Shown here piece by piece: positions 25,129-55,100 of a DNA stretch of 64,000 bases. Numbering within the stretch: position 1 is the stretch's first letter; each line of letters starts with the position of its first letter. The position numbers were made by a program, and so were the translations under genes. The notes under the pieces were generated by a model. The model searched no databases and had not been told where the DNA came from. It saw only the letters and a list, made by a program, of their open reading frames with translations. The stretch covers positions 1 through 64,000 of IMG/VR virus record IMGVR_UViG_3300025098_000012. One strand, 5' to 3'.

Positions 25129-25188
25129 GCTTTGCCTTTTCTCATATAATAAGAGGATGCAAGCTGTACTTATAAGGAGGTGCGACAT

Positions 25189-27918
25189 ATGTTTGCCGAT
25201 ATGCTTGAGTCATTAAGACGACCAAATATACAACCCAAGTTGTGGATGAAAGATTGCGAGTTAATCTTAGGCACAAAGGAAAACCTAGACCAATGTATTG
25301 ATGAGTGTATCAACAGCGTTGCGTATGGGCTTGACCTTGAGACAACAGGTCTTGATAATCGTGTGTTCAACGGACGCACAAGAGATACGATTGTAGGGGT
25401 CTGCTTGTCAGCCCATAAGGATAAGGGGTACTATTTCCCTGTTGGTCATCAAGAGGGTGTGGAACATAACATTCCTTGGAGATTGATGTATCCTGCACTT
25501 GAGCGTCTGCTTGACCTCTCTGTGAAAGCAGAGCCTATATTCCACAACGCCGCTTTTGACCAAGAGTTTTTGGAGTTCAACGAGTACAAGTCGGGTCTTG
25601 GTGAGGAGCGTTGGGACTCATTTGAATGGCACGACACCTATATCATTCAGTATCTCTTGAACCCTCGTGAAAAAGGTGGTCGAGGACTAAAGCATTTAAC
25701 TAATGCCCACCTTGAGCGAGAGATGATTGAGCTATCAGATCTTATGCCCGATGCTCCCGACAAGAACTACTCCAAACTTGATGTGAGTTGGGAACCATGT
25801 GTTTGGTATGCCGCTAGTGATGCAATGTGTACGCTTGGACTATGGGAAGTACTTTATAAGAAGTACACCGAAGCTAAAGAACACACTAACTCGATGTATA
25901 AGTTAGAGCGTATGTGTCTACTTTCAACTCGTTGGATGCACAGAAATCGTGTCTACATTGATCGAGACACAGCCTTAAAGTATAGCCAACAGGGGCAGAA
26001 GCTATGGTTCGACTCTCTGATTGATGTCTATGATGGAGCAAAAGAAATCTTAGGTCGAGACATTACCCCTAACTATGTTCGAGTCCTTAAAGGAGATCTG
26101 AAGGGAGAAAACAAGTTTAACCACATGGAAGTGGAGGGGATGAGCTATAAGACTCGTGTAGACGAAGCTCGTAAAGAAGCCTCTCGACTTTACCCCGATG
26201 AAAAGGGAGTAGTCACTAAGGCTGTGAAGATTATCGGTAAGAGTGTAGGTACAGAGGAGATTGAGTTTCCACTTACTTATGACATCCTATCCCCTCAAAA
26301 GCTCGGCTTGTTATTTAGAGAGTTGAGTGTTCCAGGTCTTAAGGCGAGTGAAAAATCGGGTCAGGTCGTTACTTCCAAAGACATTCTTGAAGAGGTCATT
26401 GAGAAGGCTTCTGATGACTTTCCATTTATGGCTAAGGTTAAGACCTTTCGTGAGCTTGGGAAGGCAATGGGTCAGTATCTCATTCCATTTGTAGAAGATG
26501 TTGGACCAGATGGGACTCTCAAGCCTAAGTTTGATCAGTTTGCCGCTGACACAGGTCGTTTTTCATGTAAGACGAATAGTAAGCCTTGGAAAGTTAAAGA
26601 TGGAGGGTGTCGTGTTCCCTTTCAAGGCATACCTGCTACCTATGACCCAAATAAACCCGAAGCTGTTGCTAAGATGCGTTCTTGTGTGGCTGTGCGTGAT
26701 GACGATTGGTGGTTAGCGGCCATTGATTACGCAGGTGTAGAGCTTCGGCTAGTTACGAACTTGAGTCTTGAGCCTAAGTGGATCAAGGCTTTCTTTGAAT
26801 GTTCAGAATGTGGCACAGCTTACCCACAAGAAATTCAAGAAGACGGATTCGCCAAAGCACCTCCATCTAACTGCGTGAACTGTGGGTCTGATAAGATTGG
26901 AGACTTACATACGATCACAGCAGTTGCGTTTTATGGCGAGGGAGCTAAGAAGCGTGATGATTGGAAAGCGTTAAGAGGTAATGGTAAGGGTTGCAACTTT
27001 GCTTTGTCTTATGGTGGTACAGGTAAGGCTGTTCAGCGTACTATTGGTTGTTCAGCCGAAGAAGCAGATGAGAAGTTCAAGAAGTTTACATCAACTTATA
27101 GTGAACTGACTAAATGGTGGTCTAAGCAACACAACTTTGGTCGTAAGCATGGATATGTAAAGACAGGTATGGGTCGTGTTCAACCATTACCCGACATCAA
27201 GTCTGATGACTTTAGGTTTAAATCCAAAGATGAGCGTAAGGCTGTTAATGGTCCAGTACAGGGTACGAGTGCTGATGTCACCAAGTTGGCGATGAGCTTC
27301 ATCTACCAAGAGACTAAGAAGCGTGGTTGGCAAGATAAACTGATGATGATCTTGACCGTCCATGACGAAATCGTGTTCGAGATCCATAAGTCGATCTTGA
27401 AAGAGGCGATTGATATGATCTCCGAGATGATGACTCGCAACAAAGTGATTAAGCGTCTAGGTTGGCGAGTGCCTTTACTTGTCGATGTTGAGCTTGGTAA
27501 GGATTGGACTGTTCCTTTTGATGTGAAAGATGTGATTGCAGGAGAAGCAGGGGATAAGGTCATTAACGCTAAGTACAAGTGCAAGGATTGTGGTGAAAAG
27601 ACTCCTCGTGACCCTAAACCGACTGCGTGTATGCACTGTGGTTCGACTAACATTAAAATTGATTACAAAGATGACTTCATTGCCAAGATCAAGAAGCAGA
27701 CGGAACAACTTTATGCCGACTATGGGGTAAATCCCGATGAAGTTGTCAAAGAGGTGGTTGTAGAAGACCCTGTTGAGAAATCGTCCGATAAGCCCACCTT
27801 TTGTGTTGAGGGACTGACGGAAGAAATCGCAAAAAACCTGTCCGATTGGATTAAATCGCAAGATGGTGAGTATGATGTGGTATATGAAGGACGGAGTATT
27901 ATTGCATTATTAGAATGA
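25189..27918 (+). CDS. polA: Family A DNA polymerase with 3'-5' exonuclease and two zinc-ribbon insertions
   Basis: Exo motifs DLETTG, HNAAFD, YAASD; polymerase motifs A (IDYAGVELR), B (RGNGKGCNFALSYG), C (TVHDEIV). ATG 25189 has AAGGAGG 8 nt upstream (the track uses GTG 25180). Confidence 0.96.
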   Translation: MFADMLESLRRPNIQPKLWMKDCELILGTKENLDQCIDECINSVAYGLDLETTGLDNRVFNGRTRDTIVGVCLSAHKDKGYYFPVGHQEGVEHNIPWRLMYPALERLLDLSVKAEPIFHNAAFDQEFLEFNEYKSGLGEERWDSFEWHDTYIIQYLLNPREKGGRGLKHLTNAHLEREMIELSDLMPDAPDKNYSKLDVSWEPCVWYAASDAMCTLGLWEVLYKKYTEAKEHTNSMYKLERMCLLSTRWMHRNRVYIDRDTALKYSQQGQKLWFDSLIDVYDGAKEILGRDITPNYVRVLKGDLKGENKFNHMEVEGMSYKTRVDEARKEASRLYPDEKGVVTKAVKIIGKSVGTEEIEFPLTYDILSPQKLGLLFRELSVPGLKASEKSGQVVTSKDILEEVIEKASDDFPFMAKVKTFRELGKAMGQYLIPFVEDVGPDGTLKPKFDQFAADTGRFSCKTNSKPWKVKDGGCRVPFQGIPATYDPNKPEAVAKMRSCVAVRDDDWWLAAIDYAGVELRLVTNLSLEPKWIKAFFECSECGTAYPQEIQEDGFAKAPPSNCVNCGSDKIGDLHTITAVAFYGEGAKKRDDWKALRGNGKGCNFALSYGGTGKAVQRTIGCSAEEADEKFKKFTSTYSELTKWWSKQHNFGRKHGYVKTGMGRVQPLPDIKSDDFRFKSKDERKAVNGPVQGTSADVTKLAMSFIYQETKKRGWQDKLMMILTVHDEIVFEIHKSILKEAIDMISEMMTRNKVIKRLGWRVPLLVDVELGKDWTVPFDVKDVIAGEAGDKVINAKYKCKDCGEKTPRDPKPTACMHCGSTNIKIDYKDDFIAKIKKQTEQLYADYGVNPDEVVKEVVVEDPVEKSSDKPTFCVEGLTEEIAKNLSDWIKSQDGEYDVVYEGRSIIALLE

Positions 27919-29756: not shown

Positions 29757-30113
29757 TTAGAGGTCGCAGAACTGACCCCACCAATCAGTATAGGTGACTT
29801 TGACCACATTAGATTTCTCGATGTGCCTTCGGCAATACTTACAAGGTCGAGCCATTGTCATCGTACCGTCTTTGAGAAATCTAATGACCTCAAGGCGATC
29901 TCCTTTTTGAGTATGCCTAAGAGCATCCATTTCAGCGTGTAGGTTGGAAACGAGAGTTCCGTCTTTAACCCTCCGAGCAAACCTTAAGTCTGTCTTGCTT
30001 GAGTTTACACCGATGTAAACAGGCTTCTTTTTTCTGAATACAATACAAGCGACATGGTACTTTTCACCATTAGACAATGCCATTCTCATAGCTTGTTTAT
30101 AAATGCGTTTCAT
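29757..30113 (-). CDS. Zinc-dependent cytidine/dCMP deaminase-fold protein
   Basis: HAEMDAL and RPCKYC motifs; YIGVN. Confidence 0.85.
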   Translation of the reverse strand: MKRIYKQAMRMALSNGEKYHVACIVFRKKKPVYIGVNSSKTDLRFARRVKDGTLVSNLHAEMDALRHTQKGDRLEVIRFLKDGTMTMARPCKYCRRHIEKSNVVKVTYTDWWGQFCDL

Positions 30114-37177: not shown

Positions 37178-37525
37178 TTAAGATTTCCACCAATCATCGA
37201 ACGCACCCCATTCGATCATCTCATATAGATCAGTAGGGATCGACCCGACACAATCATGGTGAAACCACTCACCATTTTGCCTTATACGCCACCTTTTAAG
37301 GTCTTCATGTAGGTGTGGTTCTCTCCACCCTAAACCTTCAAAAGAGGCTATAAGACGAAGCGTATTTGAGTTTCCTGTTTGAAGTTGCTTGAGTCTCTTC
37401 TTTGGGTGCTTAGAGCGACCTATCTTAATCATCCCTGTTTTGCTTTACTGGATGAAGTACAGATAGTCGCCCTGCTTTCGTTGCTTCTGCTCACGATTTC
37501 TATTTAACATTTCTTCTAAAGTCAT
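37178..37525 (-). pseudogene. T5orf172/GIY-YIG-like nuclease with in-frame TAA at codon 27
   Basis: From ATG 37525 (SD AAGGAG): MTLEEMLNRNREQKQRKQGDYLYFIQ*SKTGMIKIGRSKHPKKRLKQLQTGNS; stop at 37445-37447 falls inside the conserved first motif. Confidence 0.75.
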
Positions 37526-37573: not shown

Positions 37574-38749
37574 TCAGAAAAAATACTCATTATCATTCCA
37601 TTTAGGTTCGGGTGTTAAACCCTTACTCCAAATGAAGATCGGCTCACAAGTTGGTTGGTCTGTTTTCTGACCACCTCGCTCGGACATACGATAGCCAACC
37701 ACACCCTCATAGGTCGCTCCTAAGTTCTTCATGTGGTCAAGCATTGGTGTGCAGATGTCCTCTCCTTTTTTATCTGCAATGTTGATTGCTATCCGACCAC
37801 CTTCTTTGAGTACAGACCAACATTTAGTGAGGGTAGCGAGTAAGAAATCATTCACCCAATCATTAAGGTTTGGATAACGCTTCCACGATTGAGTCTCCTC
37901 CTCACTATATCTCTCGATGTCGAAGTAAGGAGGACTCGTGAAAACGAAGTCTACACTTATGTCAGATAAATCAGCATCCTCAGCAGGGGAACAGATAAAC
38001 CTAGTCGTTTTGCCTGTATCACAGAGGCTGACGATTTGCTTGTATGGCTCATGGAGCTGAGTATTAGGATCTATACCTATGTACGACTCAGCGTTCGAGG
38101 CGAGGAAGCCTACAAGCCTATCACCCCAACCAGCCGAGAAATCTAAGACGCTTTTGGGTTGGAACAGGTCATAGAGAGCTTTAGCCGACTCAGCTTTAAA
38201 CTGACTCGCAGTATAGGTGTGCATCTTTAAGGCTCTTCTGAGGGTTTGCTTATTGACTCCACCTCTCTCATAGATGTCTCTTTCACAAATGCCGAAGAAG
38301 CATCTTAGGAACGAGTTGCTTCTACTCGCATTGACCCACTCATCATAGGGTGAGTTTCCTTGTTTACGATAGCTACATTTCATTCTCTGTTCTTGGGTGA
38401 ACAGATTGGAAACAGTTTTCCCTCTATAGTAGTTATCAAGGTAGACTGACTTGCCTAGATAACTTGTGTCTAAGGGTTTAGCTTGACGAGGAGCGACCCA
38501 CCCTTCAAAGCAGAATGGATCTTTCCTTGCTTTGAGGGATTTAAAATCCTCGATTGCCATCTCTCTTGTGTACTCGAAGTACGGATAGGGCAAAGACTCA
38601 ATAATGGGTGCTAGATGGTCTTTGATCTGTTCCTTACTATATGTCTCACGAAGCATACTCCATTCGTTAGGGAGTATGTGAAGATACCCATCTTTAATGT
38701 ACTCGATGTCATCTAGCGAATTAAGATTGGTCTTATATTCAAAGTACAT
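37574..38749 (-). CDS. SAM-dependent amino (N4-C/N6-A) DNA methyltransferase, paralogue 3
   Basis: Motif I VLDFSAGWGDRL and motif IV FTSPPYF. Confidence 0.88.
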   Translation of the reverse strand: MYFEYKTNLNSLDDIEYIKDGYLHILPNEWSMLRETYSKEQIKDHLAPIIESLPYPYFEYTREMAIEDFKSLKARKDPFCFEGWVAPRQAKPLDTSYLGKSVYLDNYYRGKTVSNLFTQEQRMKCSYRKQGNSPYDEWVNASRSNSFLRCFFGICERDIYERGGVNKQTLRRALKMHTYTASQFKAESAKALYDLFQPKSVLDFSAGWGDRLVGFLASNAESYIGIDPNTQLHEPYKQIVSLCDTGKTTRFICSPAEDADLSDISVDFVFTSPPYFDIERYSEEETQSWKRYPNLNDWVNDFLLATLTKCWSVLKEGGRIAINIADKKGEDICTPMLDHMKNLGATYEGVVGYRMSERGGQKTDQPTCEPIFIWSKGLTPEPKWNDNEYFF

Positions 38750-39610
38750 TTAAGCACCTAAGTTCCAGAATAGGGTTTTCCCTTTTAACTTGTAAGGGTT
38801 TTCAGTGATCCACTCCCACGCTTTTTTATCCCAAAGTTTATTGCAAGGGAAAGGGGTTGTGAAGTGATCCATCTCATCGTAGAAATCAAACTCTGACTTA
38901 TAAATCTTGAGGCAAGATGGAACGCTACCAAGATTAGAGATCAGAGCATTTTGTATTGTCTTAACGCTAGAAGTAGCAACGATTACAATCTTCTTGCCTT
39001 CAAAGTCTGGCTCAAACATCGCTCCTGCAATGTAATCAACACCTAAGAAACCTTTAATCAGCCCAACACTTGTGATCCCACTTCCGCCTTGAATGACTAG
39101 GGTGTTGTACTCATTTTGAGAAAAGAACTCTTTAGAACGCTCTGTCCAATAGTTGATATAGACAGGGTGGTTGAACGCATCTGGACTCATTTGCCAATTA
39201 TTTTTTCTAGCCATCTTCTTTGTCTGAGAAGACAAGATAGCTACCATGTTGTGTCTTAAGGGGATCAGCTCTCCACCGTACAGCTCGATCTTCTTAAGAA
39301 TTTCTTGAGAGTACGCTTTTGTGTTTGGGTAAGCTATTTTGATGTCATAACCTAGCTCTTTGCCCCAATAGGCTAACGCCCAGCCTGTATATGATCCTCT
39401 AACTGTGAGATGTACGATGGGCTTATCTTTTGTGAAATAGTCTGAGGAGAGAAGTCTCCTTATGCCTTCAAGTTTAGCCCAAGGGGGGAGGTCGAGAGTT
39501 CCGTTGAGCAGATCATCTCTTTTGACATCGACATTTTTGTGTTTGACTTTGTAAGTTTCAATCGGTGTATTAAAATTTAGCACTAAACATTGCCTTTTCT
39601 TCAAACTCAA
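38750..39610 (-). CDS. Fold-type II PLP-dependent enzyme (ACC deaminase/D-Cys desulfhydrase/Cys synthase-like)
   Basis: TPIE...VKRDD...PPWAK (candidate PLP lysine), GSYTGWALAY, LVIQGGSGITSVGL, YD.KAW-like WDKKAWEW, LFWNLG. Start may be GTG ~39583. Confidence 0.82.
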   Translation of the reverse strand: MSLKKRQCLVLNFNTPIETYKVKHKNVDVKRDDLLNGTLDLPPWAKLEGIRRLLSSDYFTKDKPIVHLTVRGSYTGWALAYWGKELGYDIKIAYPNTKAYSQEILKKIELYGGELIPLRHNMVAILSSQTKKMARKNNWQMSPDAFNHPVYINYWTERSKEFFSQNEYNTLVIQGGSGITSVGLIKGFLGVDYIAGAMFEPDFEGKKIVIVATSSVKTIQNALISNLGSVPSCLKIYKSEFDFYDEMDHFTTPFPCNKLWDKKAWEWITENPYKLKGKTLFWNLGA

Positions 39611-40481
39611 TGTCCTTGAGTATTTGGTTATATATTGCTCTTGTGTCTTTATATGAAGTGCCTTTTAACAGCACTCTTCTATGTAAACCTTTTAGACCAC
39701 CGTCAGTGCCTGTAGTATGGAAGTTTGATCTGTTCGTATTGTGTTTATCAAAGTATTCTTTATGTGTATGCTGAGTAATGAACCATTTAGGTTGGATCTT
39801 ATTATTTGCAGGATTAATGAGTAGCTGATCCCATAGTAAAGTCTTACATAAAGATTCTATTTGAGGTGTGCGAAAAGGACACAACACTTCAACCCCTGTT
39901 TTTTTTAAAAATTGTCTTATCACCCACAAGTTGTGTGGGCTACCAGAGAGGTACTTTTCCTCTAACTGTTTCTCTACTAAGTTTTTAAAATAGTTATCGA
40001 GGGAAGCCCTAGACCCACCTTTTTTGTATGCACCCCAAAGGCTGTTGATTTTAGCTCCTGTATGAGCAAACATCGTAGTGTAAAAGCCTGTTACTAGATA
40101 AGGTGTAGTTATCAACTGTCTCATGTAAGTATAAGCATGACAAACCTGTGTCTCTATATTCCTCGTTGTGCGTGTAATCTTAATGACTTCTTTAACTTCC
40201 CTTAACAGGTCATCACGAATGGGATTTGAGGGTATCACTGCAACTTTCAAAGGTAGGTCATAATGCTTTGCTATTTGTCGAGCATACTCAAGGTCTTTGG
40301 AATACTCACCTTCAATCTCAAAGGTAATCAACTCTTTTGGTGGCCTTCCTAGTTCTATCATTGTGAACAAAAGCATGGAAGAGTCTATCCCACCAGAAAA
40401 CGATAAACTGATTTCATTGGGAAGGTTTTTCACAGAGTCATAGATTGCTTCTTTAAAGTCTTGTACCCATGTGTGTGTCAT
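39570..40481 (-). CDS. Stand-alone asparagine-synthetase-like PP-loop ATP pyrophosphatase (no glutaminase domain)
   Basis: LSFSGGIDSS, DLEYARQIAKHY, LVTG, LCPF; lacks the N-terminal Ntn domain and the QueC Cys cluster. Confidence 0.8.
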   Translation of the reverse strand: MTHTWVQDFKEAIYDSVKNLPNEISLSFSGGIDSSMLLFTMIELGRPPKELITFEIEGEYSKDLEYARQIAKHYDLPLKVAVIPSNPIRDDLLREVKEVIKITRTTRNIETQVCHAYTYMRQLITTPYLVTGFYTTMFAHTGAKINSLWGAYKKGGSRASLDNYFKNLVEKQLEEKYLSGSPHNLWVIRQFLKKTGVEVLCPFRTPQIESLCKTLLWDQLLINPANNKIQPKWFITQHTHKEYFDKHNTNRSNFHTTGTDGGLKGLHRRVLLKGTSYKDTRAIYNQILKDIEFEEKAMFSAKF

Positions 40482-41160
40482 ATCTTCTCATCAACTCTCT
40501 TGAGTTTTTTAACTCATTGTTTTGAGTTCTTACATGACAAGAATGAGCAAACGAGGTTACGAGTCCGAAATCTAAACAGCCACTCTCTTTACAGAGAAAA
40601 TCACAGAGATCAACGAGTGCCATATAGTCTGCGTATCCAGACTTAGATACAGCTTGGCTTCTAAAGTTAGCTGTTAAGTTAAGTTTCCCACCTCTAGGTT
40701 TCAAGTCGATTGTCAGTAAGCAAGGCAAACCGCCCATTACTTTTTTACCATCCGATTGAGGATCATACACACCAATAACGATTGTTTTAGCTTGCTTGTT
40801 CTCTCTTAGTCTCTTGATCGCCTGCTCGATTTGATTAAATCCACCGTTCCAAGAAATCATGCGACCCCAATAACTATTTGTCCATTTCCCCTCTTTGTTC
40901 TGTTTATACTCCAACATTTGTGGGAACAACATATTCGGTTCTGGCTTCACAAATGTAACAGACTTAGCGTAGTCGATACGCTCATCTCCAAAGATGCCTC
41001 TGAACTCCCGATCAAATACAGGACAAACATCGGATGATTTGATCTCGATACCCATGTTCAAGATCTCATAAAGACCACCCATATTCATGCCTTTGTCAAG
41101 AATGTCTTGAGTCGCTTTGACCCATGCTTCTGCACAGTTATTTGCTGTTATATGGTACAT
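40453..41160 (-). CDS. Thymidylate-synthase-fold pyrimidine-modifying enzyme, dCMP-hydroxymethylase-like (divergent)
   Basis: NQIEQAIKRL, catalytic LPC, KLNLTANFRSQAVSKSGYADY (Asp at the TS Asn177 position), AHSCH. Confidence 0.82.
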   Translation of the reverse strand: MYHITANNCAEAWVKATQDILDKGMNMGGLYEILNMGIEIKSSDVCPVFDREFRGIFGDERIDYAKSVTFVKPEPNMLFPQMLEYKQNKEGKWTNSYWGRMISWNGGFNQIEQAIKRLRENKQAKTIVIGVYDPQSDGKKVMGGLPCLLTIDLKPRGGKLNLTANFRSQAVSKSGYADYMALVDLCDFLCKESGCLDFGLVTSFAHSCHVRTQNNELKNSRELMRRYDTHMGTRL

Positions 41161-41163
41161 ATC

Positions 41164-42369
41164 TTATACTCCAAAGTAGCTATCTTGAGTCCACTTAGGT
41201 TCGGGGGCTGAACCCTTACTCCAAATGAAAATCGGCTCACAGAATACATCCATCTTGGATAGCTCATCATTTAATGAGTGATGGTTTCCTGGTCTCTTTG
41301 CCATACGATAACCAATCACTCCCTCATAGTTTGCCCCTAATGAATTCATATACTCGATCATGGGCTGACACACTCGGATGTTTCCTCTTACTTTATCGGA
41401 GATGTTTACGCATATCCTCCCTCCCTCTTCTAAGCAATCCCAACATTGCTTGAGGGTTGGGTAAAGAAACCCATTCAGCCAATCGTCAGTCTCTGGATAA
41501 CGCTTCCATGATTGAGTCTCTTCTTGACTATATTTCTCGGTGTCGAAATAAGGTGGACTCGTGAAAACGAAGTCTACTTTAACATCGGACAGGTCAGCAT
41601 CTTCGGCAGGTGAACAGATGAACCTAGTGGTCTTACTCGTAGAACAATAATCAGCGATCTTCTGATAAGGTTCATGTAACTTTGTGTTAGGGTCGAGTCC
41701 TACATAGGACTCGGCATCAGAAGCGAGGAATCCAACTAATCTATCGCCCCATCCCATAGAGAAATCCAATACTCTTTTAGCTCCGAAGAAGTTATACATA
41801 GCCTTAGCTAAAGTAGGTTTGAACTGTGCAGGGATATAACCAGACATACCGATAGCGTTTACAAGTATCTTGCTGTTCACACCTTTTGACGGATCATACA
41901 ATGTCCATAAAGGTCTAAGGAACGCTCTCTTTTTGGACTTGAGGTTAGTTCGTGTCCATTGTCTCATTGCACTTGGGAACTGCTTATGGTCTACCTCTAA
42001 ACGCATAGGTTCACTATATTGATTAGAGACTTTGAGTCCTTTGTTATTAGGTGCGAAGTAAAGATACTTACCTTTGTAAGTATGGTCTTCGTCTAACTGA
42101 CATCGAGGCAATCCCCAAGCACCCGATTGAGGGATCATGTAATCGGACTGAACCTCCAACCAATCTTTCTTGATCTCTTGTGGTGTGTACTTAGTGAGGG
42201 GGTAAGGTAAATCTTCAATCTTTGCAGACAGATAATCAGTGATCTCATCTCTGCTAAAGCTATCTACCATTTCTAACCACTGATGGGGTGGGATAAAGAT
42301 TTCATCCCCTTTCAAAACCTCATACTCTTCTAGGTTATCTTTTTTGGTTTTTTCATAGTCAAAGAACAT
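41164..42369 (-). CDS. Amino DNA methyltransferase, paralogue 2
   Basis: VLDFSMGWGDRL; FTSPPYF; highly similar to 42403-43608. Confidence 0.88.
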   Translation of the reverse strand: MFFDYEKTKKDNLEEYEVLKGDEIFIPPHQWLEMVDSFSRDEITDYLSAKIEDLPYPLTKYTPQEIKKDWLEVQSDYMIPQSGAWGLPRCQLDEDHTYKGKYLYFAPNNKGLKVSNQYSEPMRLEVDHKQFPSAMRQWTRTNLKSKKRAFLRPLWTLYDPSKGVNSKILVNAIGMSGYIPAQFKPTLAKAMYNFFGAKRVLDFSMGWGDRLVGFLASDAESYVGLDPNTKLHEPYQKIADYCSTSKTTRFICSPAEDADLSDVKVDFVFTSPPYFDTEKYSQEETQSWKRYPETDDWLNGFLYPTLKQCWDCLEEGGRICVNISDKVRGNIRVCQPMIEYMNSLGANYEGVIGYRMAKRPGNHHSLNDELSKMDVFCEPIFIWSKGSAPEPKWTQDSYFGV

Positions 42370-42402: not shown

Positions 42403-43608
42403 TTATATCTTAAAGTAAGTATCTTGAGTCCATTTAGGTTCGGGAGCTGAACCCTTACTCCAAATGAAAATCGGTTCGCAAAACACATTTACCTTAGACA
42501 GATCCTCGTTCAATGAGTGATGGTTTCCTGGTCTCTTCGACATCCTATAACCAATCACTCCCTCGTAAGTAGCACCTAATGACTCCATGTATTCAATCAT
42601 GGGTTGGCATACTCGTATATCACCATAAACCTTGTCTGATATATTGACGCAGATCCGTCCTCCGTCTTCTAATACCTCCCAACATTTTTTAAGAGTCGGG
42701 TAAAGAAATCCATTGAGCCAGTCATCTGTTTTGGGGTATCTCTTCCAACTCTGAGTATCTTCTTGGCTATACTTCTCGGTATCAAAGTAAGGAGGGCTTG
42801 TGAAGATAAAGTCTACTTTAACATCAGTTAGGTCTGCATCCTCAGCTGGAGAACAAATGAACTTAGTTTCTTTGTTTGCATTACAGTACGAATCTATTTG
42901 TCCATAAGGTTCATGGAGCTTAGTGTTAGGGTCGAGTCCTACATAGGACTCAGCGTCAGAAGCCAGAAACCCTACGAGCCTATCGCCCCACCCCATTGAG
43001 AAATCTAAGACCTTCTTTGCACCGAAGAAGTTATACATAGCTTTAGCTAGTGTTGGTTTGAACTGTGCAGGTATGTAATAAGCCATATTTATAGCGTTAA
43101 AGAGCATTTTCCTATTAACCCCTTTAGACCTGTCGTATAGGGTGAAAAAGGGTCTAAGGAAGTATCTCTTATCGCCTTTCATCCCTATACGAGTCCATTG
43201 AGTCATAGCACATTTGTACTCTCGATGATCTACTAATACTCTTGCGAACTCGGTGAACTGATTAGAGACTTTGAGTCCTTTGTTATTAGGTGCAAAGTAA
43301 AGATGCCTACCTTTATAAGTATGGTCACCATCTAACTGACATCGAGGCAATCCCCACTCTCCTGTGATTAGAGGCATATAGTCCGACTGAGTATCTAGCC
43401 AATCACGATGCACTTCTTGAGGAGTATATTTAGTATATGGGAATGGCAGTCCTTCAATCTTGCTTGATAGGTAAGTGATGATCTCATCACGAGTAAACTT
43501 ATCAAGCATCTCTGACCACTGATGAGGGGGTATGAAGATCTCTTGTCCTCTTACGACATCATATTCCTCTATGTCTTCTTTGGGTTTCTTTTCATAATCA
43601 AAAAACAT
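42403..43608 (-). CDS. Amino DNA methyltransferase, paralogue 1
   Basis: VLDFSMGWGDRL; FTSPPYF. Confidence 0.88.
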   Translation of the reverse strand: MFFDYEKKPKEDIEEYDVVRGQEIFIPPHQWSEMLDKFTRDEIITYLSSKIEGLPFPYTKYTPQEVHRDWLDTQSDYMPLITGEWGLPRCQLDGDHTYKGRHLYFAPNNKGLKVSNQFTEFARVLVDHREYKCAMTQWTRIGMKGDKRYFLRPFFTLYDRSKGVNRKMLFNAINMAYYIPAQFKPTLAKAMYNFFGAKKVLDFSMGWGDRLVGFLASDAESYVGLDPNTKLHEPYGQIDSYCNANKETKFICSPAEDADLTDVKVDFIFTSPPYFDTEKYSQEDTQSWKRYPKTDDWLNGFLYPTLKKCWEVLEDGGRICVNISDKVYGDIRVCQPMIEYMESLGATYEGVIGYRMSKRPGNHHSLNEDLSKVNVFCEPIFIWSKGSAPEPKWTQDTYFKI

Positions 43609-43637: not shown

Positions 43638-43923
43638 TTATACTCCAAAGTAAGTATCTTGAGTCCATTTAGGTTCGGATGGGTTAGAACCTTTATACCA
43701 AACAAAGATCGGTTCGCAAAACACGCACCCTCCAACAACCCCTTGATTTTCCTGGTCTCTTTTTCGTCCTGTATCCGATAACTCCCTCATATGATTTCTT
43801 TCCTTGTGTATTGATCTAGGATAGAATCCCACAGGTCAGACGGTATTGAGAACTCGTTGTTCTCATTTAATAGCTTTATCTCCTTGAGGGGTGGGAGTTT
43901 AGGCTTTTCGATTTCAAAAACAT
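43638..43923 (-). pseudogene. Internally deleted, frameshifted relic of a fourth methyltransferase paralogue
   Basis: N-terminal piece (MF-fs-EIEKPK...IPSDLWDSILDQYTRKEII) abuts C-terminal pieces (YEGVIGYRTKKRPG; VFCEPIFVWYKG...EPKWTQDTYFGV), each in a different frame; about 0.9 kb including both catalytic motifs is missing. Confidence 0.85.
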
Positions 43924-46249: not shown

Positions 46250-47125
46250 ATGATCAAGTCGCCTCTTAATTACATTGGAGGGAAATCAAAGCTGTTAACT
46301 CAAATCGTACCCAGATTCCCTACTCAAGTTGATACCTTTGTAGACCTCTTCGCAGGAGGGTGTACTGTAGGCTTAAATGTTCGCTCAAATAAAACTATCT
46401 TCAATGATAATCTAACTTACTTGATAGACCTATATCGGAAGCTACAAGATTTAAGTGCCGAAGAGGTTTTTGAACACATAAATGGAAGGATTGACACTTT
46501 AGGTCTTTCTAAAACGAATGAGACTGGATACATCGCCTTAAGGTCTGAGTACAATGCAAACAAAAATCCGTTAGACTTGTTTGTTCTAGTGGCATACTCA
46601 TTCAACCATCAAATTAGGTTCAACAATAGCCATCAGTTCAACTTGCCTTTTGGTAAAGACAGAAGCCACTTCAATAAAACAATGAAGAGAAACCTTCGCT
46701 CGTTCTTAACGAGAATTAAAGAGATGGACTGCACATTTTCAAATGTCTCTTTTGAGGACTTTGATTTCTCGGATCTGACTAAGGAGGATCTTGTTTACTG
46801 CGATCCTCCTTACTTGATCTCTACTGGAAGTTATAATGATGGAAAGCGTGGCTTTAAAGGATGGGGGAATACAGAAGAGGAATGTCTACTAGACTTGCTC
46901 GACAGTTTAAATGAGAGAGAGGTACGCTTTGCTTTATCTAATGTCGTGGAACATAAGGGAGAAGAAAACAATCTCCTCAAAGATTGGGTTGGGGATAGAG
47001 GGTACAACCTCTACCCTCTTAACTTTGACTACAAAAACAGCTCATATCAAGGTTCTTCAGAAGGTGAGACTAAGGAAGTGCTTATAACTAACTACCCAAC
47101 GAACTATTCTCTTTTGTTTTTTTGA
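46250..47125 (+). CDS. dam: Dam-like (D12 class) N6-adenine DNA methyltransferase
   Basis: SPLNYIGGKSKL, FVDLFAGG, SFNHQIRFN...FNLPFG, YCDPPY, EVLITNY. Confidence 0.92.
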   Translation: MIKSPLNYIGGKSKLLTQIVPRFPTQVDTFVDLFAGGCTVGLNVRSNKTIFNDNLTYLIDLYRKLQDLSAEEVFEHINGRIDTLGLSKTNETGYIALRSEYNANKNPLDLFVLVAYSFNHQIRFNNSHQFNLPFGKDRSHFNKTMKRNLRSFLTRIKEMDCTFSNVSFEDFDFSDLTKEDLVYCDPPYLISTGSYNDGKRGFKGWGNTEEECLLDLLDSLNEREVRFALSNVVEHKGEENNLLKDWVGDRGYNLYPLNFDYKNSSYQGSSEGETKEVLITNYPTNYSLLFF

Positions 47126-47128
47126 TGC

Positions 47129-48784
47129 TTACTTAACTTTTATAATGTCTCGTGCGTCATCGAGCAGACCATCAAACAGATCAGCGATTTCAGACTGACC
47201 CACCTCAAGAACAGCATCATCTTCTCCGTCCTCTTTAAGACGCTTACCTAAGACAGCTTCAATGAGGTTCATCTTAGCCTTTAGGGTTTTCATTACCCTC
47301 TCGTCAATCGTCTTAGGAGCACAGATATGGTAGCTATAGACTTTATCGTGAATAGACCCAATACGGATCATGCGACCAATAATCTGTAAGTAATCACCTG
47401 CTGACCAAGGAGTGTCGAAAAAGATAACAGCCTTAGCAAGTTGGAGGTTTACACCTTCGGCAGCCGCCATTGTGATGAGGCAAACCTTAGTGTCGCTCTC
47501 AGCATCTTGGAAAGCCTTCTGACTCTCAAGACGCTGTTCGCCCGACTCAGCTCCTGTGATACGACAAGTCTTGACCTTCTTGCTCTCGATTTCTGCTTCG
47601 AGGATGTCTACCATACCCCTAAAGCGAGAGAAGATGATGACCTTTTCACCCTCAAGCTCATTCTCTAAAAGGTCAAGCAAGGTGTCGAGCTTACCAGAGT
47701 CTCCATCACAGTCAATCAATGCAGGGTGGTTTACGATTTGTTGACAAACGGTGACTGCTGTCAGTTTCGTTACTTCACGCTCCATGACCTCGCCTGTTTC
47801 GGGGTCGAGATACTCAAGTAAACCTTCAAGAGCTTCTGCGTATTTGTTCTTTTGAGGCTTAGATAGCTCGCAGTTTACAACCTTTGTTGTAAGAGGGGGC
47901 AACTCCTGTGCAACCTCATGCTTAGGGCGACCTAAGAAATAAGGGTCGATGTGTTCCCTAAACGCTTCGATGTCTCGCTTACGGTGTCCGACTACGATTT
48001 GAATTCGCCTACGAGAACCAGGGATGGGTTGATCTCTAGTGATGCAATACTCACGCATAAAGTGAGTCTTTGTAGAAAACAGATGGGGAACAGTCACCTT
48101 ATAGATCGCCCATGCTTCCATAAGTCGGTTCTTAATGATGGTCGCTGATAAAGACCACACACGCTCTGCTGAACCTGCGAGATGTTTACAGACTTGGTGG
48201 ACTTGAGAGCGATCATTCTTGAAGGCTGTCGCTTCATCAAAGATCATCACATGACCTGTGATGTCTTGGAGGTGTTGGAAATCTTGGACTGCTGTCCGAT
48301 AACCCATAATGAGAGCTTTAGGGCCTTCATAAGCCTTGAACTCATTGTGGATTTTCTCACGCTTCTTCTTTGTGCCTAGACACTTAAAGACCTTAACCCC
48401 TGTGGTGAACTTATCGAACTCGGACTCCCACTGACCTACAGCCGACTTGGTAGTACAGATAAGAGCAGGTATATCGGGTCGTTTATCCCATAAGTAAGAG
48501 AGCGTAGCGATGGTTTGTAAAGTCTTACCTAGACCTGTATCATCACCAAGTACAAAGCGAGGCATAGCGAGTAAGTGCAATACACCTTGTATCTGATACT
48601 GTCTTAGCTGAAGCTCTGCCCCATTAGAGAGATGAGTGTTGAGTATCTTACAGGCAGGTGGAGTCAGATCGTCTTTGACTCTGATCTCTCTGAGCTTTTC
48701 AATCGTAGCGAGTAGTTTCTTGTTGTCCATATGAGTACACCCCTCCTTTGGGTGTGGAATGTACTTATATGATCTATCCTTCAA
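47129..48784 (-). CDS. SNF2-family helicase/translocase
   Basis: GDDTGLGKT, FDEAT, SAT, KVIIFS, AEGVNLQ, QIIGRMIRIG. Confidence 0.93.
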   Translation of the reverse strand: MKDRSYKYIPHPKEGCTHMDNKKLLATIEKLREIRVKDDLTPPACKILNTHLSNGAELQLRQYQIQGVLHLLAMPRFVLGDDTGLGKTLQTIATLSYLWDKRPDIPALICTTKSAVGQWESEFDKFTTGVKVFKCLGTKKKREKIHNEFKAYEGPKALIMGYRTAVQDFQHLQDITGHVMIFDEATAFKNDRSQVHQVCKHLAGSAERVWSLSATIIKNRLMEAWAIYKVTVPHLFSTKTHFMREYCITRDQPIPGSRRRIQIVVGHRKRDIEAFREHIDPYFLGRPKHEVAQELPPLTTKVVNCELSKPQKNKYAEALEGLLEYLDPETGEVMEREVTKLTAVTVCQQIVNHPALIDCDGDSGKLDTLLDLLENELEGEKVIIFSRFRGMVDILEAEIESKKVKTCRITGAESGEQRLESQKAFQDAESDTKVCLITMAAAEGVNLQLAKAVIFFDTPWSAGDYLQIIGRMIRIGSIHDKVYSYHICAPKTIDERVMKTLKAKMNLIEAVLGKRLKEDGEDDAVLEVGQSEIADLFDGLLDDARDIIKVK

Positions 48785-52133: not shown

Positions 52134-55100
52134 ATGGCTAATCCAACAGAGTTAACAAGCATATTTGAGACATTAGTTAAAGAAATCAATGAGGCTGGAC
52201 AGTCCGATTTATTAAAAGGTTCGGTAGGGTCTATTAAAGACTTACAGGCTGTCCTTAAAGAGCAAGACAAACTCATAGATAAGACTCTTAGGGCAGGTGA
52301 TCAAAAAGCGGCGATGCGTATCATCAAGTCAGCCAAACAAGCTCAAGAGGCACAAGTAGAGGCGACTAATAACCTTAGAGATGCAAAAGAAAAACTATTA
52401 AAGTTAGAGCAAGAAGGCAACACGAAAGCGAGAGATGCACAGCTCAAGGTCATTGGGAAGATCAACCAAGAAATCAACAAGTTGGCTAGAGAAGCCAAAC
52501 TCATGCAGAAGAACGCCGCTGAGTTTGGTAAGGGTGCAGAGTACAGCCTCTTGCAATACTCAAGGGTCTTGGAGAACCGAGAAGAGCGTATCAAAGAGCT
52601 TGGTAAAACAGGTGCTTTGATTGAGGAGAAGTTCTCGAACAGATTTGAAGGAGCAGTTAATGCGTTCACATCGGGAGTTGGGGATCTTAATAGTTTTGGG
52701 GATACTTTTACAGGTGGGCTTAAAACATTAGGGAGTTATTTACAGGAGAGAAAAGGTAAATTGGAGGAAAAGGGTTCCGCAGGTAAGGGTGGTTTGGGCA
52801 TAGCTAGAATGCTCGGTGGTCTGTCTAAGGTAATGAGTACACTTGCTGTTGTAGGTGGCTCTATAATGATGATGGTAAAGTTATTTCAGTTCGTAGAGGG
52901 AACTGTCCTCGAAGCAAATAAAGCACTCTTAGAGGGTGGTGTAGCGATCAATGATATTAACTTAGGGACAGGAGACACTCAGAAAAATCTTGCAAAAATA
53001 AGAGACACCTTTAGAGATCCAGATTTTGCCAACGCTATGGGTATACCTCTTGAAGACACTATGGCTCTAGTAGCAGGGTTCAATAGTTTGAATATGGGCA
53101 TTAAACAGTTTGGGGGTGGGGAAGAAAGCATGGTGAAAATGAAAGAAGCCATGAAGGACGCTAAGGGTATGGCTTATGGTCTTGGTATCTCGATGGACGA
53201 AGCCCAACAATATATGGCTAAGTTTTCACATGATTTAGGGGTGTCTGCTAAAGACGGTTCTATTATAGGCAAAATGGCAGGAGACTTTGCCAACATTAGA
53301 GATATGGCTTTACAATCAAGCTACTCTACAGGGAACTTCTTCAAAAAAGTTGAGGAACTTTCTGATAGCTTAGAGAACATGAACTATCGCTCCAAAGAAG
53401 CTGGTACTTTATTCCTTAGATTCGCTTCTGTTCTTGGTAAGAGTGGGCTAGATAAAGCTCTTCAATCTCTGTTCTCTGGGTTCAGAAGTGAAGGATACCT
53501 TGAGCAAATGAAGCGTAATATGCTGTCTAAGTCAAAGGAAGTCAAAAAGGCTTTAAAGGTAGAAGCGATTAAGTTTGGGAAATCCTTTAAAGAGTCTTTT
53601 GGTGGGGAAGACGGAGAAGGGGGGATGAATGCAAAACTGATGGCGGCGACTAAATCTTCTTCTCAAGAACAGTTGATCCAAAATTTAGCAAAAATGGACG
53701 AGAAGGGAAGACAGGACTTATTTACGAGGATGAAAAAGGAGGGTGCTGATGCAGGTATTAATACTGATGAGTTCACCGACCAACTATATAAGTTCATAAG
53801 GCTTGCTAGAGGAACAAAGGACAAAGCAACAGGGGCAGAGGTGCAAGGTGCTCAAGAAGAGATGGGGGCATCGGGTAACTTAAAGACTAAGTTTGCTCTG
53901 ATCGAGGCGAGGGTTGGAGACAAGAATATAAATGACGCAGGCGTGATTACAAAAGAAATGTTAACTAAGTTTGATGTGACTAAAGAGCAAATAGAATTGT
54001 TCGGTCAGCTCCAAACAACAATGAAGGGTGATATGAGGGAAGCCCAAAGAATCGCAAAGGACGCTAAAAAGGAGAACAGAGAACTCAATAAAGAAGAAAA
54101 AGACTTCTTAGCGAAACAAGGGTTGGAAGCAAAAGACGGTAAAATTATTTCCTTAGAAACTAAGACGGCTATTGAGAACTTCTCTGATTACTTGCAAACA
54201 CAAGACTCGGCTAAGTTTGAACCCCCCGATACAGAAGAAGCGGCTAAAACCCAAGAGCAGTATTTATCTGAGGGAGTGAATGCGACTACCTCTGTATTCA
54301 ATGTCTTGAATAACACGATTGCAGGGATCTTGAATGACATTTCGGGTGGGATATATAGTATGGTGACCTTCTTCACAAGTAAGGGCGAAGATAAAACTGA
54401 AAAAAAGAACAAGAAAGAAGCTGTGAGGATTGTAGGCGAAAGGCTGAAAGCTCTTTCAGGACAAAGAAAAGAACAGGACGCTTCTATAAAAGCTGAAAAA
54501 GAAAGACTCCACGATTTGTCTTTTAAAACAAAGGGGATGAAAGCTAAGGAGAAGGAAAAATATGAGAAGGACAAAAAAGCACTAGCTGAGAAAGAAAAAG
54601 ATCTGGTGGAGTTGAAGGCAAGAGAGAGTAGATCAAGAGAACAGTTAAGAACATTACAAACTACAACTTACGACAAGGGTTTAGGTAAAAGTTATACTAC
54701 AGAAGAGATGCTAGATAAGAGTGGTAAGGCATCATTAGAGACAAGGAAAAGGACAGGCACAGAAACGGGAGCATTAGGAGATCTTCAAGAAAAGCAGAAA
54801 CTCTTTTATGCCCCTATTGCAGATATAATAGGTGATACAACCACAAAGGCTCTTCTTGATTACCTAGCAAAAACCAACGACATCCATGTAGACTCAAAGA
54901 TTGTTGAGTTTCTGGCAAAAAACGACCTTTCAGTTAAGCGGACTCAGACTGAGACGGGGGGTAGATTTTCTGGTGAGGGTAGAGTTGAACAAAGGCTATT
55001 AAAAAATAATAATGCTGTAGCTAAATTGTCAAGAGCGTATAACAGAGAGAGTGGGAGGGAAACAGCAAGAATATACGATACACAGGAGGGTAGACTTACA

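Follow-up and report, generated by a model that had tools for sequence, protein, structure and literature searches.

We analysed a 64,000-nucleotide window of viral DNA (positions 1 to 64,000 of IMG/VR record IMGVR_UViG_3300025098_000012) from a marine jumbo phage whose 226.7-kb genome record is 73% complete. Our starting point was a gene for a thymidylate synthase (TS) homologue at positions 40453-41160, which lies within a run of genes on the minus strand. The genes and remnants of this cassette are as follows:

37574-38749, minus strand: methyltransferase-like paralogue 1, 391 aa, with a motif-I-like GWGDR, a motif IV SPPY, and an N-terminal domain of about 190 aa with no known match.
38750-39610, minus strand: fold-type-II PLP enzyme, 286 aa, a full-length homologue of Pseudomonas phage M6 gp52, a PLP-dependent decarboxylase of amino-acid:nucleobase conjugates in DNA; Lys46 is invariant and is the candidate PLP lysine.
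39570-40481, minus strand: short Asn-synthetase-like PP-loop protein, 303 aa, without a glutaminase domain, of the CmoY family of ATP-dependent amide ligases; its ORF overlaps the end of the TS-like gene by 29 nt.
40453-41160, minus strand: TS-like protein, 235 aa, ATG start, the only TS homologue in the genome record.
41164-42369, minus strand: methyltransferase-like paralogue 2, 401 aa; this paralogue was modelled, and its C-terminal half is predicted to be a class I methyltransferase nearest to the Trm11/TrmN/RlmKL exocyclic-amine methyltransferases.
42403-43608, minus strand: methyltransferase-like paralogue 3, 401 aa, 78% identical to paralogue 2.
43638-43832, minus strand: 64-aa ORF whose C-terminus, compared by eye, repeats the C-terminal motif of the methyltransferase-like paralogues, and which is the remnant of a fourth copy; a near-identical phage carries five copies.

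As an initial verification, we asked whether the TS-like protein belongs to the TS superfamily. It passes Pfam PF00303 narrowly (27.1 bits, cut-off 24.3), and an AF2 model predicts a TS fold with high confidence (pLDDT 93.8, pTM 0.91). Superposition of the model with VIA-align gave Z scores of 17-20 over about 200 residues to solved TS-family structures, including TS, MilA, and AfhB. The best NCBIfam model was the methanogen-type TS, TIGR03283, but its score of 67.8 bits is far below the curated cut-off of 174.55, and all NCBIfam ThyA models also score far below their cut-offs. A search of GenBank phages for near-identical DNA returned nothing, tblastn with the protein returned only weak hits of at most 24% identity to ordinary phage TS genes, and no cultured relative was found.

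The original prediction, made by eye, was that the catalytic Cys is kept and a cytosine-type Asp is present, but that the folate Asp, the phosphate Arg pair, and the 3'-OH Tyr are replaced. HMM and profile alignments to E. coli ThyA, RB69 gp48/AfhB, and MilA reproduced every one of these substitutions, so the observation is confirmed residue for residue. Pro146-Cys147 matches P-C146; Arg167-Ser168-Gln169-Ala170 matches R166-S167-C168-D169; Asp178 (GYADY) matches N177; Gln-Ala-Lys125-Thr126 matches D-S-R126-R127; and His209-Val-Arg211 matches H207-L-Y209. Tyr97 corresponds to Tyr94. We then examined 133 relatives and found that the pattern is a property of the family, arising from neither chance nor misalignment. 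Pro146-Cys147, Tyr97, Arg167-Ser168, and His209 are invariant or at least 95% conserved, Asp178 is invariant, and the folate Asp is absent in every member. In contrast, bona fide methanogen-type TS (sequences P0152 and P0163) and archaeal MtrA-TS-pterin-domain fusions keep D169, N177, and Y209, which indicates that the substitutions are family traits and not traits of the scaffold. We note two nuances. Lys125 is invariant, so one arginine of the phosphate pair is conservatively kept. Arg211 is not conserved as such, but is one of two alternative seats of an obligatory arginine: 96 members carry Arg at position 170, the folate-Asp site, and the remaining 37, which have Ala, Thr, or Pro there, carry it at 211. 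An arginine occupies one seat or the other in 133 of 133 sequences, never both and never neither. A maximum-likelihood tree built without these two columns requires at least 4 state changes, of which at least 2 are forced by strongly supported branches; the swap rests on few independent events, and a sign test was not significant.

The closest characterised relatives are the flavin-dependent 5-hydroxy-dCMP synthases RB69 gp48, DLP3 gp80, and HY126 AfhB (Lee et al. NAR 2026, PMC13326640; He et al. Nat Chem Biol 2026). They gave the top Foldseek hit, the nearest solved structures (PDB 9iqu, Z 20.4; 9iqc, Z 20.0; against about 17.5 for canonical TS), and the best PDB profile hit (E 7.6e-10), and alignment to a gp48-family profile with hhalign gave a probability of 98.2% and E 3e-13 over the full length. 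Shared features include a small TS fold of about 235 aa, the P-C nucleophile, R-S-Q after the phosphate Arg, Asp at the Asn177 site, loss of the folate Asp, and an RI(D/S)Y motif in the N-terminal half. These enzymes are also phage-encoded and form the first step of a cytosine hypermodification. However, identity is only 16-22%, and the diagnostic D169N is present in 0 of 133 sequences. The acidic residue at the L143 site (Glu in gp48, Asp in T4 gp42) is likewise never present; the site is Gly144 in this phage and G, S, K, R, or L in the family. Their partners are glycosyltransferases, sugar-nucleotide enzymes, and a dNMP kinase, as opposed to an amide ligase, a PLP or radical-SAM enzyme, and SPPY methyltransferase-like proteins. 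The CMP hydroxymethylase MilA (PDB 5jnh/5b6d) is nearly as close structurally (Z 19.9) and by profile (E 3.7e-9), and the methanogen-type TS MJ0757 shares the compact scaffold (TM 0.74/0.78, rmsd 2.9), but MilA and the methanogen-type TS keep Asp169 and Tyr209 (and Asn177 in the TS). Alignment with hhalign to T4 gp42, which keeps Asp169, gave a probability of only 13%.

The main finding of our analysis, which did not form part of the original prediction, is that this gene sits in a conserved cassette. The TS-like gene lies beside a CmoY-family ligase in 81 of 85 loci and 15 of 16 lineages, usually with overlapping or abutting genes. The ligase matches Pfam PF00733, and a 7-member alignment of the neighbouring ligases aligned with CmoY of Synechococcus phage S-B43 over the full length (hhalign 99.9%, E 1.7e-33; pairwise BLASTP 26% identity, E 5e-10). 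Most of the ligases carry a glutaminase domain (about 501 aa). Every lineage also has either a PLP enzyme homologous to M6 gp52 or a radical-SAM enzyme, and methyltransferase-like genes, assigned to the DNA-methylase family PF01555, occur in 14 of 16 lineages. A TS-like/radical-SAM fusion was seen in three samples. One locus, L101, appeared to encode a TS-like/glutaminase/ligase fusion, which would have been Rosetta-stone evidence, but reading the joint revealed a deletion that removes the TS-like C-terminal helix and the N-terminal catalytic Cys of the glutaminase, and we excluded it as evidence. A PNPOx gene in another cassette, L015, first seemed to hint at flavin chemistry; it is a PLP-forming oxidase and supports the PLP partner instead. 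The cassette usually lies among nucleotide-metabolism and replication genes such as RNR, thioredoxin, and polymerases, and a Pfam scan of other recurrent neighbour families gave only uninformative matches or ordinary replication genes. Searches of the phage's own genome for ThyX, dUTPase, dCTPase, MazG, dNMP kinase, CmoA (TIGR00740), and C5-methyltransferases (PF00145) were negative, apart from two sub-cut-off (13-bit) stretches for thymidylate kinase; because the record is 73% complete, absence is not proven. No CmoA was found in any of the 85 loci. Full-text literature searches, including look-ups in PMC7824862, found no paper describing this cassette.

Two known systems resemble the cassette in part. 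In phage S-B43, CmoA, CmoX, and CmoY make 5-carboxymethylcytosine and its glycine amide (Yang et al. Nat Commun 2025, PMC12783734). CmoY was shown experimentally to amidate the carboxyl of 5-carboxymethylcytosine, and the C5-transferase CmoX, a C5-DNA-methyltransferase homologue with SPPC and Arg350, uses a key Arg to hold that carboxyl. Both systems combine an enzyme that attacks cytosine C6 with a cysteine (here inferred from homology) to functionalise C5 with an Asn-synthetase-like ligase, both include glutaminase-fused ligase variants (ammonia-using in the CmoY cluster of that paper), and in both an arginine matters at the active site of the C5 enzyme. The C5 enzyme here, however, has a predicted TS fold, CmoA (the Cx-SAM synthase) and a PF00145 gene were not detected, no carboxyl donor can be named from sequence, and PLP or radical-SAM and N6_N4-type methyltransferase-like components are added. 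In the thymidine hypermodification pathways of phages M6 and ViI (Lee et al. NAR 2021, PMC8989533), a TS homologue provides the handle and radical-SAM enzymes occur as alternative tailoring enzymes, and the PLP enzyme of our cassette is 27-28% identical to M6 gp52. The cassette has no 5-HMUDK kinase and no aGPT-Pplase amino-acid:DNA transferase, its base is inferred from Asp178 to be cytosine and not uracil, and its radical-SAM enzymes showed no similarity to M6 gp53 (E 1.3).

The cassette very probably builds a new chemical modification of cytosine in phage DNA. We tentatively propose that the protein is a catalytically competent, folate-independent member of the TS superfamily that starts an uncharacterised cytosine hypermodification pathway. 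In this view it would bind a cytosine nucleotide, most likely dCMP: Arg167, Ser168, and Lys125' would hold the phosphate, Asp178 would read N3/N4, and Cys147 would attack C6 and make C5 nucleophilic. Instead of taking a one-carbon unit from methylene-THF, it would install a carboxyl-bearing substituent at C5, either 5-carboxyl from CO2/bicarbonate or a carboxyalkyl group from a small oxo-acid such as glyoxylate, and the obligatory arginine would hold the new carboxylate. The ligase would then adenylate the carboxylate and convert it to an amide, using ammonia from the fused glutaminase in most lineages and ammonia or another amine in this one. After incorporation into DNA, the PLP or radical-SAM enzyme and the SPPY methyltransferase-like paralogues would tailor the base, and the likely end result would be an amide-type hypermodified cytosine that protects phage DNA from host nucleases. 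Our analysis establishes the predicted fold, the residue pattern with loss of the folate Asp, the arginine swap, the homologies of the partners, and the conservation of the cassette. The cytosine-nucleotide substrate, the lack of folate use, the activity of the ligase, and its functional coupling to the TS-like enzyme are inferred, and the identity of the C5 substituent and the order and level (nucleotide or DNA) of the later steps are speculative. In support of this model, the usual carboxyl source was not detected, which leaves the TS-like enzyme as the only C5-activating enzyme of the cassette. We note, however, that no TS-fold enzyme is known to carboxylate or carboxyalkylate a pyrimidine, and that the closest characterised relative is a hydroxylase. 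Guilt by association cannot tell which cassette member makes the carboxylate, and the ligase could also work with reversed polarity, on a free acid and an amine on the base. If the product is a primary carboxamide, a PLP decarboxylase homologue has no obvious substrate. Because no dCTPase, dUTPase, or dNMP kinase was found in the incomplete genome, a full pre-replicative replacement of dC is not supported.

The functional reading of the original prediction was partly supported. That the enzyme may not use methylene-THF is well supported, and the assignment of a cytosine-type Asp is supported. Its further suggestion, that the Tyr-to-Arg change could accommodate a 3'-phosphate and hence mean action on DNA, can be neither shown nor excluded: Arg211 is present in only 37 of 133 members, and the arginine, although essential, could bind a carboxylate, a flavin, a phosphate, or a 3'-phosphodiester. 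Direct action on cytosine flipped out of DNA after replication, as a TS-fold counterpart of CmoX, remains a doubtful alternative. In such an enzyme the arginine would bind the 3'-phosphodiester, and the lost Arg21/Arg126'/Arg127' would no longer be needed because the 5'-phosphate is a diester. The characterised homologues of two partners, CmoY and M6 gp52, act on DNA, the third partner belongs to a DNA-methylase family, the arginine can sit at the 3'-OH-contacting Tyr209 site, no dCTPase, dUTPase, or dNMP kinase was detected in the genome, and the methyltransferase-like paralogue arrays suggest sequence-context-specific work on DNA. On the other hand, every characterised member of the superfamily, including the nearest relative, acts on mononucleotides, the Arg167-Ser168 clamp of the 5'-phosphate is conserved, and net charge and pI, used as a proxy for DNA binding, gave no consistent signal (median pI 6.6). 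Structurally related small viral TS-like clusters are also fused to the nucleotide-level enzymes dCMP deaminase or thymidylate kinase, and the surrounding nucleotide-metabolism genes point the same way.

The strongest rival, possible but less likely than our model, is a flavin-dependent cytosine 5-hydroxylase that makes 5-hydroxy-dCMP from dCMP, O2, and reduced flavin, as its nearest relatives do. The 5-OH would then serve as the handle; for example, a methyltransferase-like paralogue could O-alkylate it with a carboxymethyl or amino-carboxypropyl group from a SAM derivative, on which the ligase and the PLP enzyme would work, following the logic of tRNA cmo5U and of O-seryl-thymine in phage ViI. 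An arginine near the cofactor site could stabilise a reduced flavin, and the methyltransferase-like genes are frequent in the cassette. Against this reading stand the missing diagnostic residues, and the fact that 5-hydroxycytosine offers the ligase no carboxylate and that the Cx-SAM route would need CmoA. Among the cassettes whose neighbours were annotated, glycosyltransferases appear only in one (L016), and no thymidylate-kinase-type kinase was found in the phage's own genome. A folate- or pterin-dependent dCMP hydroxymethylase or methylase that contacts the cofactor through other residues is unlikely. The nucleophile and general-base set is complete, Asp178 is as in T4 gp42 and MilA, and D169 mutants of E. 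coli TS retain some activity (a D169C structure, 1nce, exists). However, the folate/pterin-dependent relatives examined (E. coli ThyA, T4 gp42, MilA, methanogen-type TS, and the pterin-domain fusions) keep the Asp, which in 96 of 133 members here is replaced by a bulky cationic Arg projecting from that site, and the acidic L143 residue of hydroxymethylases is missing. Least likely is an ordinary TS of the small archaeal type, although relatives are annotated as such and the genome has no other TS homologue and no detected ThyX, because the family lacks Asn177, Asp169, and Tyr209, and Asp at position 177 switches TS from dUMP to dCMP (Hardy & Nalivaika 1992; Liu & Santi 1992, cited in PMC13326640). 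A non-catalytic nucleotide-binding subunit is likewise improbable given the conservation of Cys147, Tyr97, and His209.

Phage DNA hypermodifications decide the outcome of restriction, CRISPR, and other nuclease-based defences, and have supplied tools for epigenetic sequencing and DNA labelling. Two cofactor classes are documented for the TS superfamily, folate or pterin, which is long established, and flavin, reported only in 2025-2026, and this family fits neither diagnostic signature. It carries an obligatory arginine that has moved between the former folate site and the former sugar site, and it is linked to a CmoY-type ligase without a detectable copy of the Cx-SAM machinery that normally supplies the ligase's substrate. 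A bolder form of our model, also tentative, is that the TS fold has been recruited for a third kind of chemistry, the folate-independent installation of a carboxyl-type handle on cytosine C5, possibly even directly on DNA. This would feed a glutamine-dependent amide ligase, a PLP or radical-SAM enzyme, and SPPY methyltransferases to give an unknown amide-type hypermodified cytosine widespread in marine and freshwater jumbo phages. Knowledge of the product would probably reveal a new natural DNA base and a new reaction for a textbook enzyme fold, and would assign functions to three neighbouring gene families that are currently annotated as 'thymidylate synthase', 'asparagine synthase', 'threonine dehydratase', and 'DNA methylase'. 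Public sequencing runs holding the phage are represented by Logan contigs of marine metagenomes. The family is also abundant: a homologue search returned 181 hits at E<=0.001, a library of 50%-identity representatives held 12 clusters at E<=1e-30, and many of the relatives lie on 100-375-kb viral contigs from sea and fresh water.

We first examined the coding region itself and its relation to known thymidylate synthases (TS). The window is the first 64 kb of a 226,698-bp IMG/VR virus record, a jumbo phage that CheckV rates 73% complete, and the public sequencing runs that hold it are marine and seawater metagenomes. The coordinates 40453-41160 match an ORF of 235 aa on the minus strand, which passes Pfam PF00303 only narrowly (27.1 bits against a cut-off of 24.3). 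Its best NCBIfam model is the methanogen-type TS, TIGR03283, at 67.8 bits against a cut-off of 174.55. It is the only TS homologue in the record, and no ThyX was found there. An AlphaFold2 model built on 26 family members is very confident (pLDDT 93.8, pTM 0.91) and has an unmistakable TS fold. Structural comparison with VIA-align gave Z scores of 20.4 and 20.0 to the phage HY126 dCMP hydroxylase AfhB (9iqu and 9iqc, respectively), 19.9 to MilA, and about 17.5 to canonical thymidylate synthases.

As an initial verification, we aligned the protein by HMM and profile methods to E. coli ThyA, RB69 gp48 (identical to AfhB over the aligned stretch shown, residues 118-227 of 9iqu), T4 gp42, and MilA. 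Pro146-Cys147 corresponds to P-C146; Arg167-Ser168-Gln169-Ala170 to R166-S167-C168-D169; Asp178 to N177; Gln-Ala-Lys125-Thr126 to D-S-R126-R127; and His209-Val-Arg211 to H207-L-Y209. The original prediction, which had named a retained catalytic Cys, a cytosine-type Asp, and replacement of the folate Asp, the phosphate Arg pair, and the 3'-OH Tyr, is therefore confirmed in each residue. Its interpretation, that the enzyme may not use methylene-THF and that a Tyr-to-Arg change could accommodate a 3'-phosphate and hence action on DNA, is partly supported, as described below.

We next asked whether these substitutions belong to the compact scaffold or to a separate family. Relatives that pass the TIGR03283 cut-off (the proteins P0152 and P0163) keep Asp169, Asn177, and Tyr209, as do the archaeal MtrA-TS-pterin-binding-domain fusions. 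The substitutions are thus family traits rather than scaffold traits, and they define a separate family. A homology search returned 181 hits at E<=0.001, and a library of representatives at 50% identity held 12 clusters at E<=1e-30. Nearly all members are 220-240 aa, and many lie on viral contigs of 100-375 kb. Residues that are at least 95% conserved in 133 members are C147, Y97-G99-R100, N109-Q110, K125, K154-P155-R156, R167-S168, K173-G175-Y176-D178, S207-H209, E216, and an N-terminal F49-D50..F53-R54..G58..R61-I62-D63 motif. On sequence grounds, this is the profile of an active enzyme, not a relic.

The same alignment revealed an arginine swap. Position 170, the folate-Asp site, is Arg in 96 members and Ala, Thr, or Pro in 37. 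Position 211, the 3'-OH Tyr site, is Arg in exactly those 37 and never in the other 96, such that no sequence has both and none has neither. A maximum-likelihood tree built without those two columns needs at least four state changes, of which at least two are forced by strongly supported branches. The number of independent events is too small for a significant sign test, so this is a strong pattern rather than a proof. It indicates that one arginine is required in the pocket that holds the pterin and the sugar edge in ordinary TS, and that it can be supplied from either wall. Arg211 is thus real and important, but it is not the simple Tyr-to-Arg change that was first proposed. Position 144, the L143 site, is Asp or Glu in hydroxymethylases and in 5-hydroxy-dCMP synthases, whereas here it is G, S, K, R, or L.

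The closest characterised enzymes are flavin-dependent. RB69 gp48, DLP3 gp80, and diverse viral TS homologues were shown to make 5-hydroxy-dCMP using a loosely bound flavin and O2, and they carry the signatures N177D, L143E, and a diagnostic D169N (Lee et al., NAR 2026, PMC13326640); the AfhB structures are 9iqc and 9iqu. The present family is closer to these enzymes than to anything else that has been characterised. A PDB profile search gave E 7.6e-10, against 3.7e-9 for MilA and 3e-4 or worse for canonical TS, and hhalign gave a probability of 96% to gp48 alone and 98.2%, E 3e-13 (global), to a 16-sequence gp48 profile, compared with 78% for ThyA and 13% for T4 gp42. However, two of the three signatures are lacking: D169N occurs in 0 of 133 members and L143E never. 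The family therefore behaves like a sister branch that has also left folate behind, not like a member of the hydroxylase family.

The TS-like gene is one of several co-oriented genes, which in the window run as follows:

43638-43832 (-), 64-aa ORF that repeats the C-terminal motif of the methyltransferase-like paralogues and is the remnant of a fourth copy
42403-43608 (-), methyltransferase-like paralogue
41164-42369 (-), methyltransferase-like paralogue
40453-41160 (-), TS-like gene
39570-40481 (-), 303-aa Asn-synthetase-like PP-loop protein, which overlaps the TS-like gene by 29 nt
38750-39610 (-), 286-aa PLP enzyme
37574-38749 (-), third methyltransferase-like paralogue

To assess whether this arrangement is conserved, we retrieved 79 IMG/VR loci with the family profile and added six loci from other sources, giving 85 loci in 16 TS-like lineages at 70% identity, and scanned their ORFs with HMMs of the neighbours. 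The PP-loop protein is present in 81 of 85 loci and 15 of 16 lineages; it is almost always the next gene, and most copies are about 501 aa with an N-terminal class-II glutaminase domain. The PLP enzyme is present in 74 loci. A radical-SAM enzyme takes its place in other lineages, and every lineage has one or the other (16 of 16). The methyltransferase-like family is present in 70 loci and 14 of 16 lineages, often in several copies. The 98%-identical relative L025 (a 375-kb contig) has five full or partial copies; the array is expanding and decaying. Natural fusions also occur: a TS-like/radical-SAM fusion of 676 aa in three independent samples (locus L013, proteins P0127/P0271) and a radical-SAM/N6_N4 methyltransferase-like fusion of 801 aa in locus L087 (4486-6891). 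L013 also has an ATP-grasp gene inside the cassette. In contrast, an apparent fusion in locus L101 (8001-10133), in which a 710-aa ORF joins the TS-like domain, a glutaminase domain, and an Asn-synthase domain, was excluded as evidence. Its joint is a deletion that removes the last ~18 aa of the TS-like protein and the N-terminal catalytic Cys of the glutaminase, and it is probably a defective variant or an assembly artefact.

The partners have informative homologues. The PP-loop protein is a full-length homologue of CmoY of Synechococcus phage S-B43 (hhalign 99.9%, E 1.7e-33). CmoY was shown to be an ATP-dependent ligase that amidates the carboxyl of 5-carboxymethylcytosine in DNA with glycine, and glutaminase-fused relatives presumably use ammonia (Yang et al., Nat Commun 2025, PMC12783734). 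In that system the carboxymethyl group is put on C5 by CmoX, a C5-methyltransferase homologue that uses Cx-SAM from CmoA and holds the carboxyl with a key arginine. The PLP enzyme is a full-length homologue (27-28% identity) of phage M6 gp52, which was shown to be a PLP-dependent decarboxylase of amino-acid:nucleobase conjugates in DNA (Lee et al., NAR 2021, PMC8989533), and a candidate PLP lysine is invariant. One cassette, in locus L015, carries a pyridoxamine-5'-phosphate oxidase (PNPOx) gene (10402-11013) right after the PLP-enzyme gene, which appears to be a phage-borne supply of PLP. The methyltransferase-like proteins keep a GWGDR SAM-binding motif and an invariant SPPY. Their model (pLDDT 87.5) is nearest to the Trm11/TrmN/RlmKL exocyclic-amine methyltransferases, and a search with the N-terminal domain of about 190 aa gave no structural match.

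We also examined what is missing. Searches of the 73%-complete record found no CmoA and no C5-DNA-methyltransferase, and none of the 85 loci has a CmoA. No ThyA, dUTPase, or MazG was found in the record, and no thymidylate kinase above its cut-off. Two cytidine/dCMP-deaminase-family genes (PF00383, 35 and 69 bits) are present, at 29757-30113 (-) in the window and at 134702-135043 (-) in G000, the genome record, which makes an odd pyrimidine-metabolism set for a phage with a cytosine-type TS homologue.

Our analysis establishes a TS fold with an intact Cys, Tyr, and His catalytic set, an Asp at the specificity position, loss of the folate Asp throughout the family, an obligatory arginine in the former cofactor pocket, and linkage to a CmoY-type ligase gene across the family at the frequencies given. 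Mutagenesis of ThyA and gp42 has shown that the Asp selects cytosine (Hardy & Nalivaika 1992; Liu & Santi 1992; Graves et al. 1992, cited in PMC13326640). From these features we infer, without direct evidence of catalysis by either protein, that the enzyme activates C5 of a cytosine nucleotide without folate and delivers the substrate of the ligase. The ligase family needs a carboxylate on the C5 substituent, and nothing else in the cassette or genome is known to provide one. Hence, the most economical proposal is that the TS-like enzyme itself installs a carboxyl-bearing group, with the arginine binding it as Arg350 does in CmoX. C5-methyltransferases are reported to add aldehydes to C5 and to decarboxylate 5-carboxycytosine through the same Cys-C6 adduct (Liutkeviciute et al. 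2009, 2014), which makes both an oxo-acid adduct and an ATP-pulled carboxylation chemically conceivable. In this view the ligase would give the amide, the SPPY enzymes could methylate an exocyclic or amide nitrogen, and the PLP or radical-SAM enzyme would tailor further. The identity of the group and the level (nucleotide or DNA) of each step are speculative, and we hold the model as a whole only tentatively, although we prefer it to the alternatives.

Among those alternatives, flavin-dependent 5-hydroxylation is favoured by homology, but it is disfavoured by the failed signatures and by the lack of a carboxyl source, since no CmoA was found in the 73%-complete record or in the 85 loci; we consider it possible but less likely. 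Action on DNA, as first suggested, draws support from the DNA-level precedents of the partners and from the absence of dCTPase and kinase genes from the 73%-complete record. However, it is disfavoured by the invariant 5'-phosphate clamp, by all precedent in the superfamily, and by the lack of a basic surface signal, and we regard it as unlikely. Residual folate chemistry is similarly unlikely, and an ordinary TS or a dead enzyme is very unlikely. Phage pyrimidine hypermodification started by a TS homologue is already known. Full-text literature searches found no description of the present cassette or of a TS homologue paired with a CmoY-type ligase; the CmoY paper searched only contigs with CmoX, and the 5-hydroxycytosine paper selected D169N homologues. 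There is a fair chance that the chemistry is new for the fold.

A Dam-like D12-class N6-adenine DNA methyltransferase (PF02086, E 6e-39; 46250-47125, +) lies about 2.6 kb from the cassette, next to an SNF2-family helicase (47129-48784, -), and the phage thus carries at least two kinds of DNA-modification genes. Directly downstream of the cassette is an 84-aa T5orf172/MUG113-domain ORF (37178-37432, -), from a family linked to GIY-YIG-like mobile nucleases. In another of the loci, L029, a GIY-YIG/NUMOD3 homing-endonuclease ORF runs into the TS-like ORF. Mobile nucleases seem to target this locus. Elsewhere in the window are four very large ORFs of 1875, 1090, 1206, and 1455 aa (3671-9298, -; 9298-12570, -; 52134-55754, +; and 57518-61885, +, respectively), of which the two on the plus strand have no Pfam match. 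A family-A DNA polymerase of 912 aa (25180-27918, +) carries a short zinc-ribbon-like C-terminal stretch, which gives a sub-threshold HypA hit at residues 795-828.
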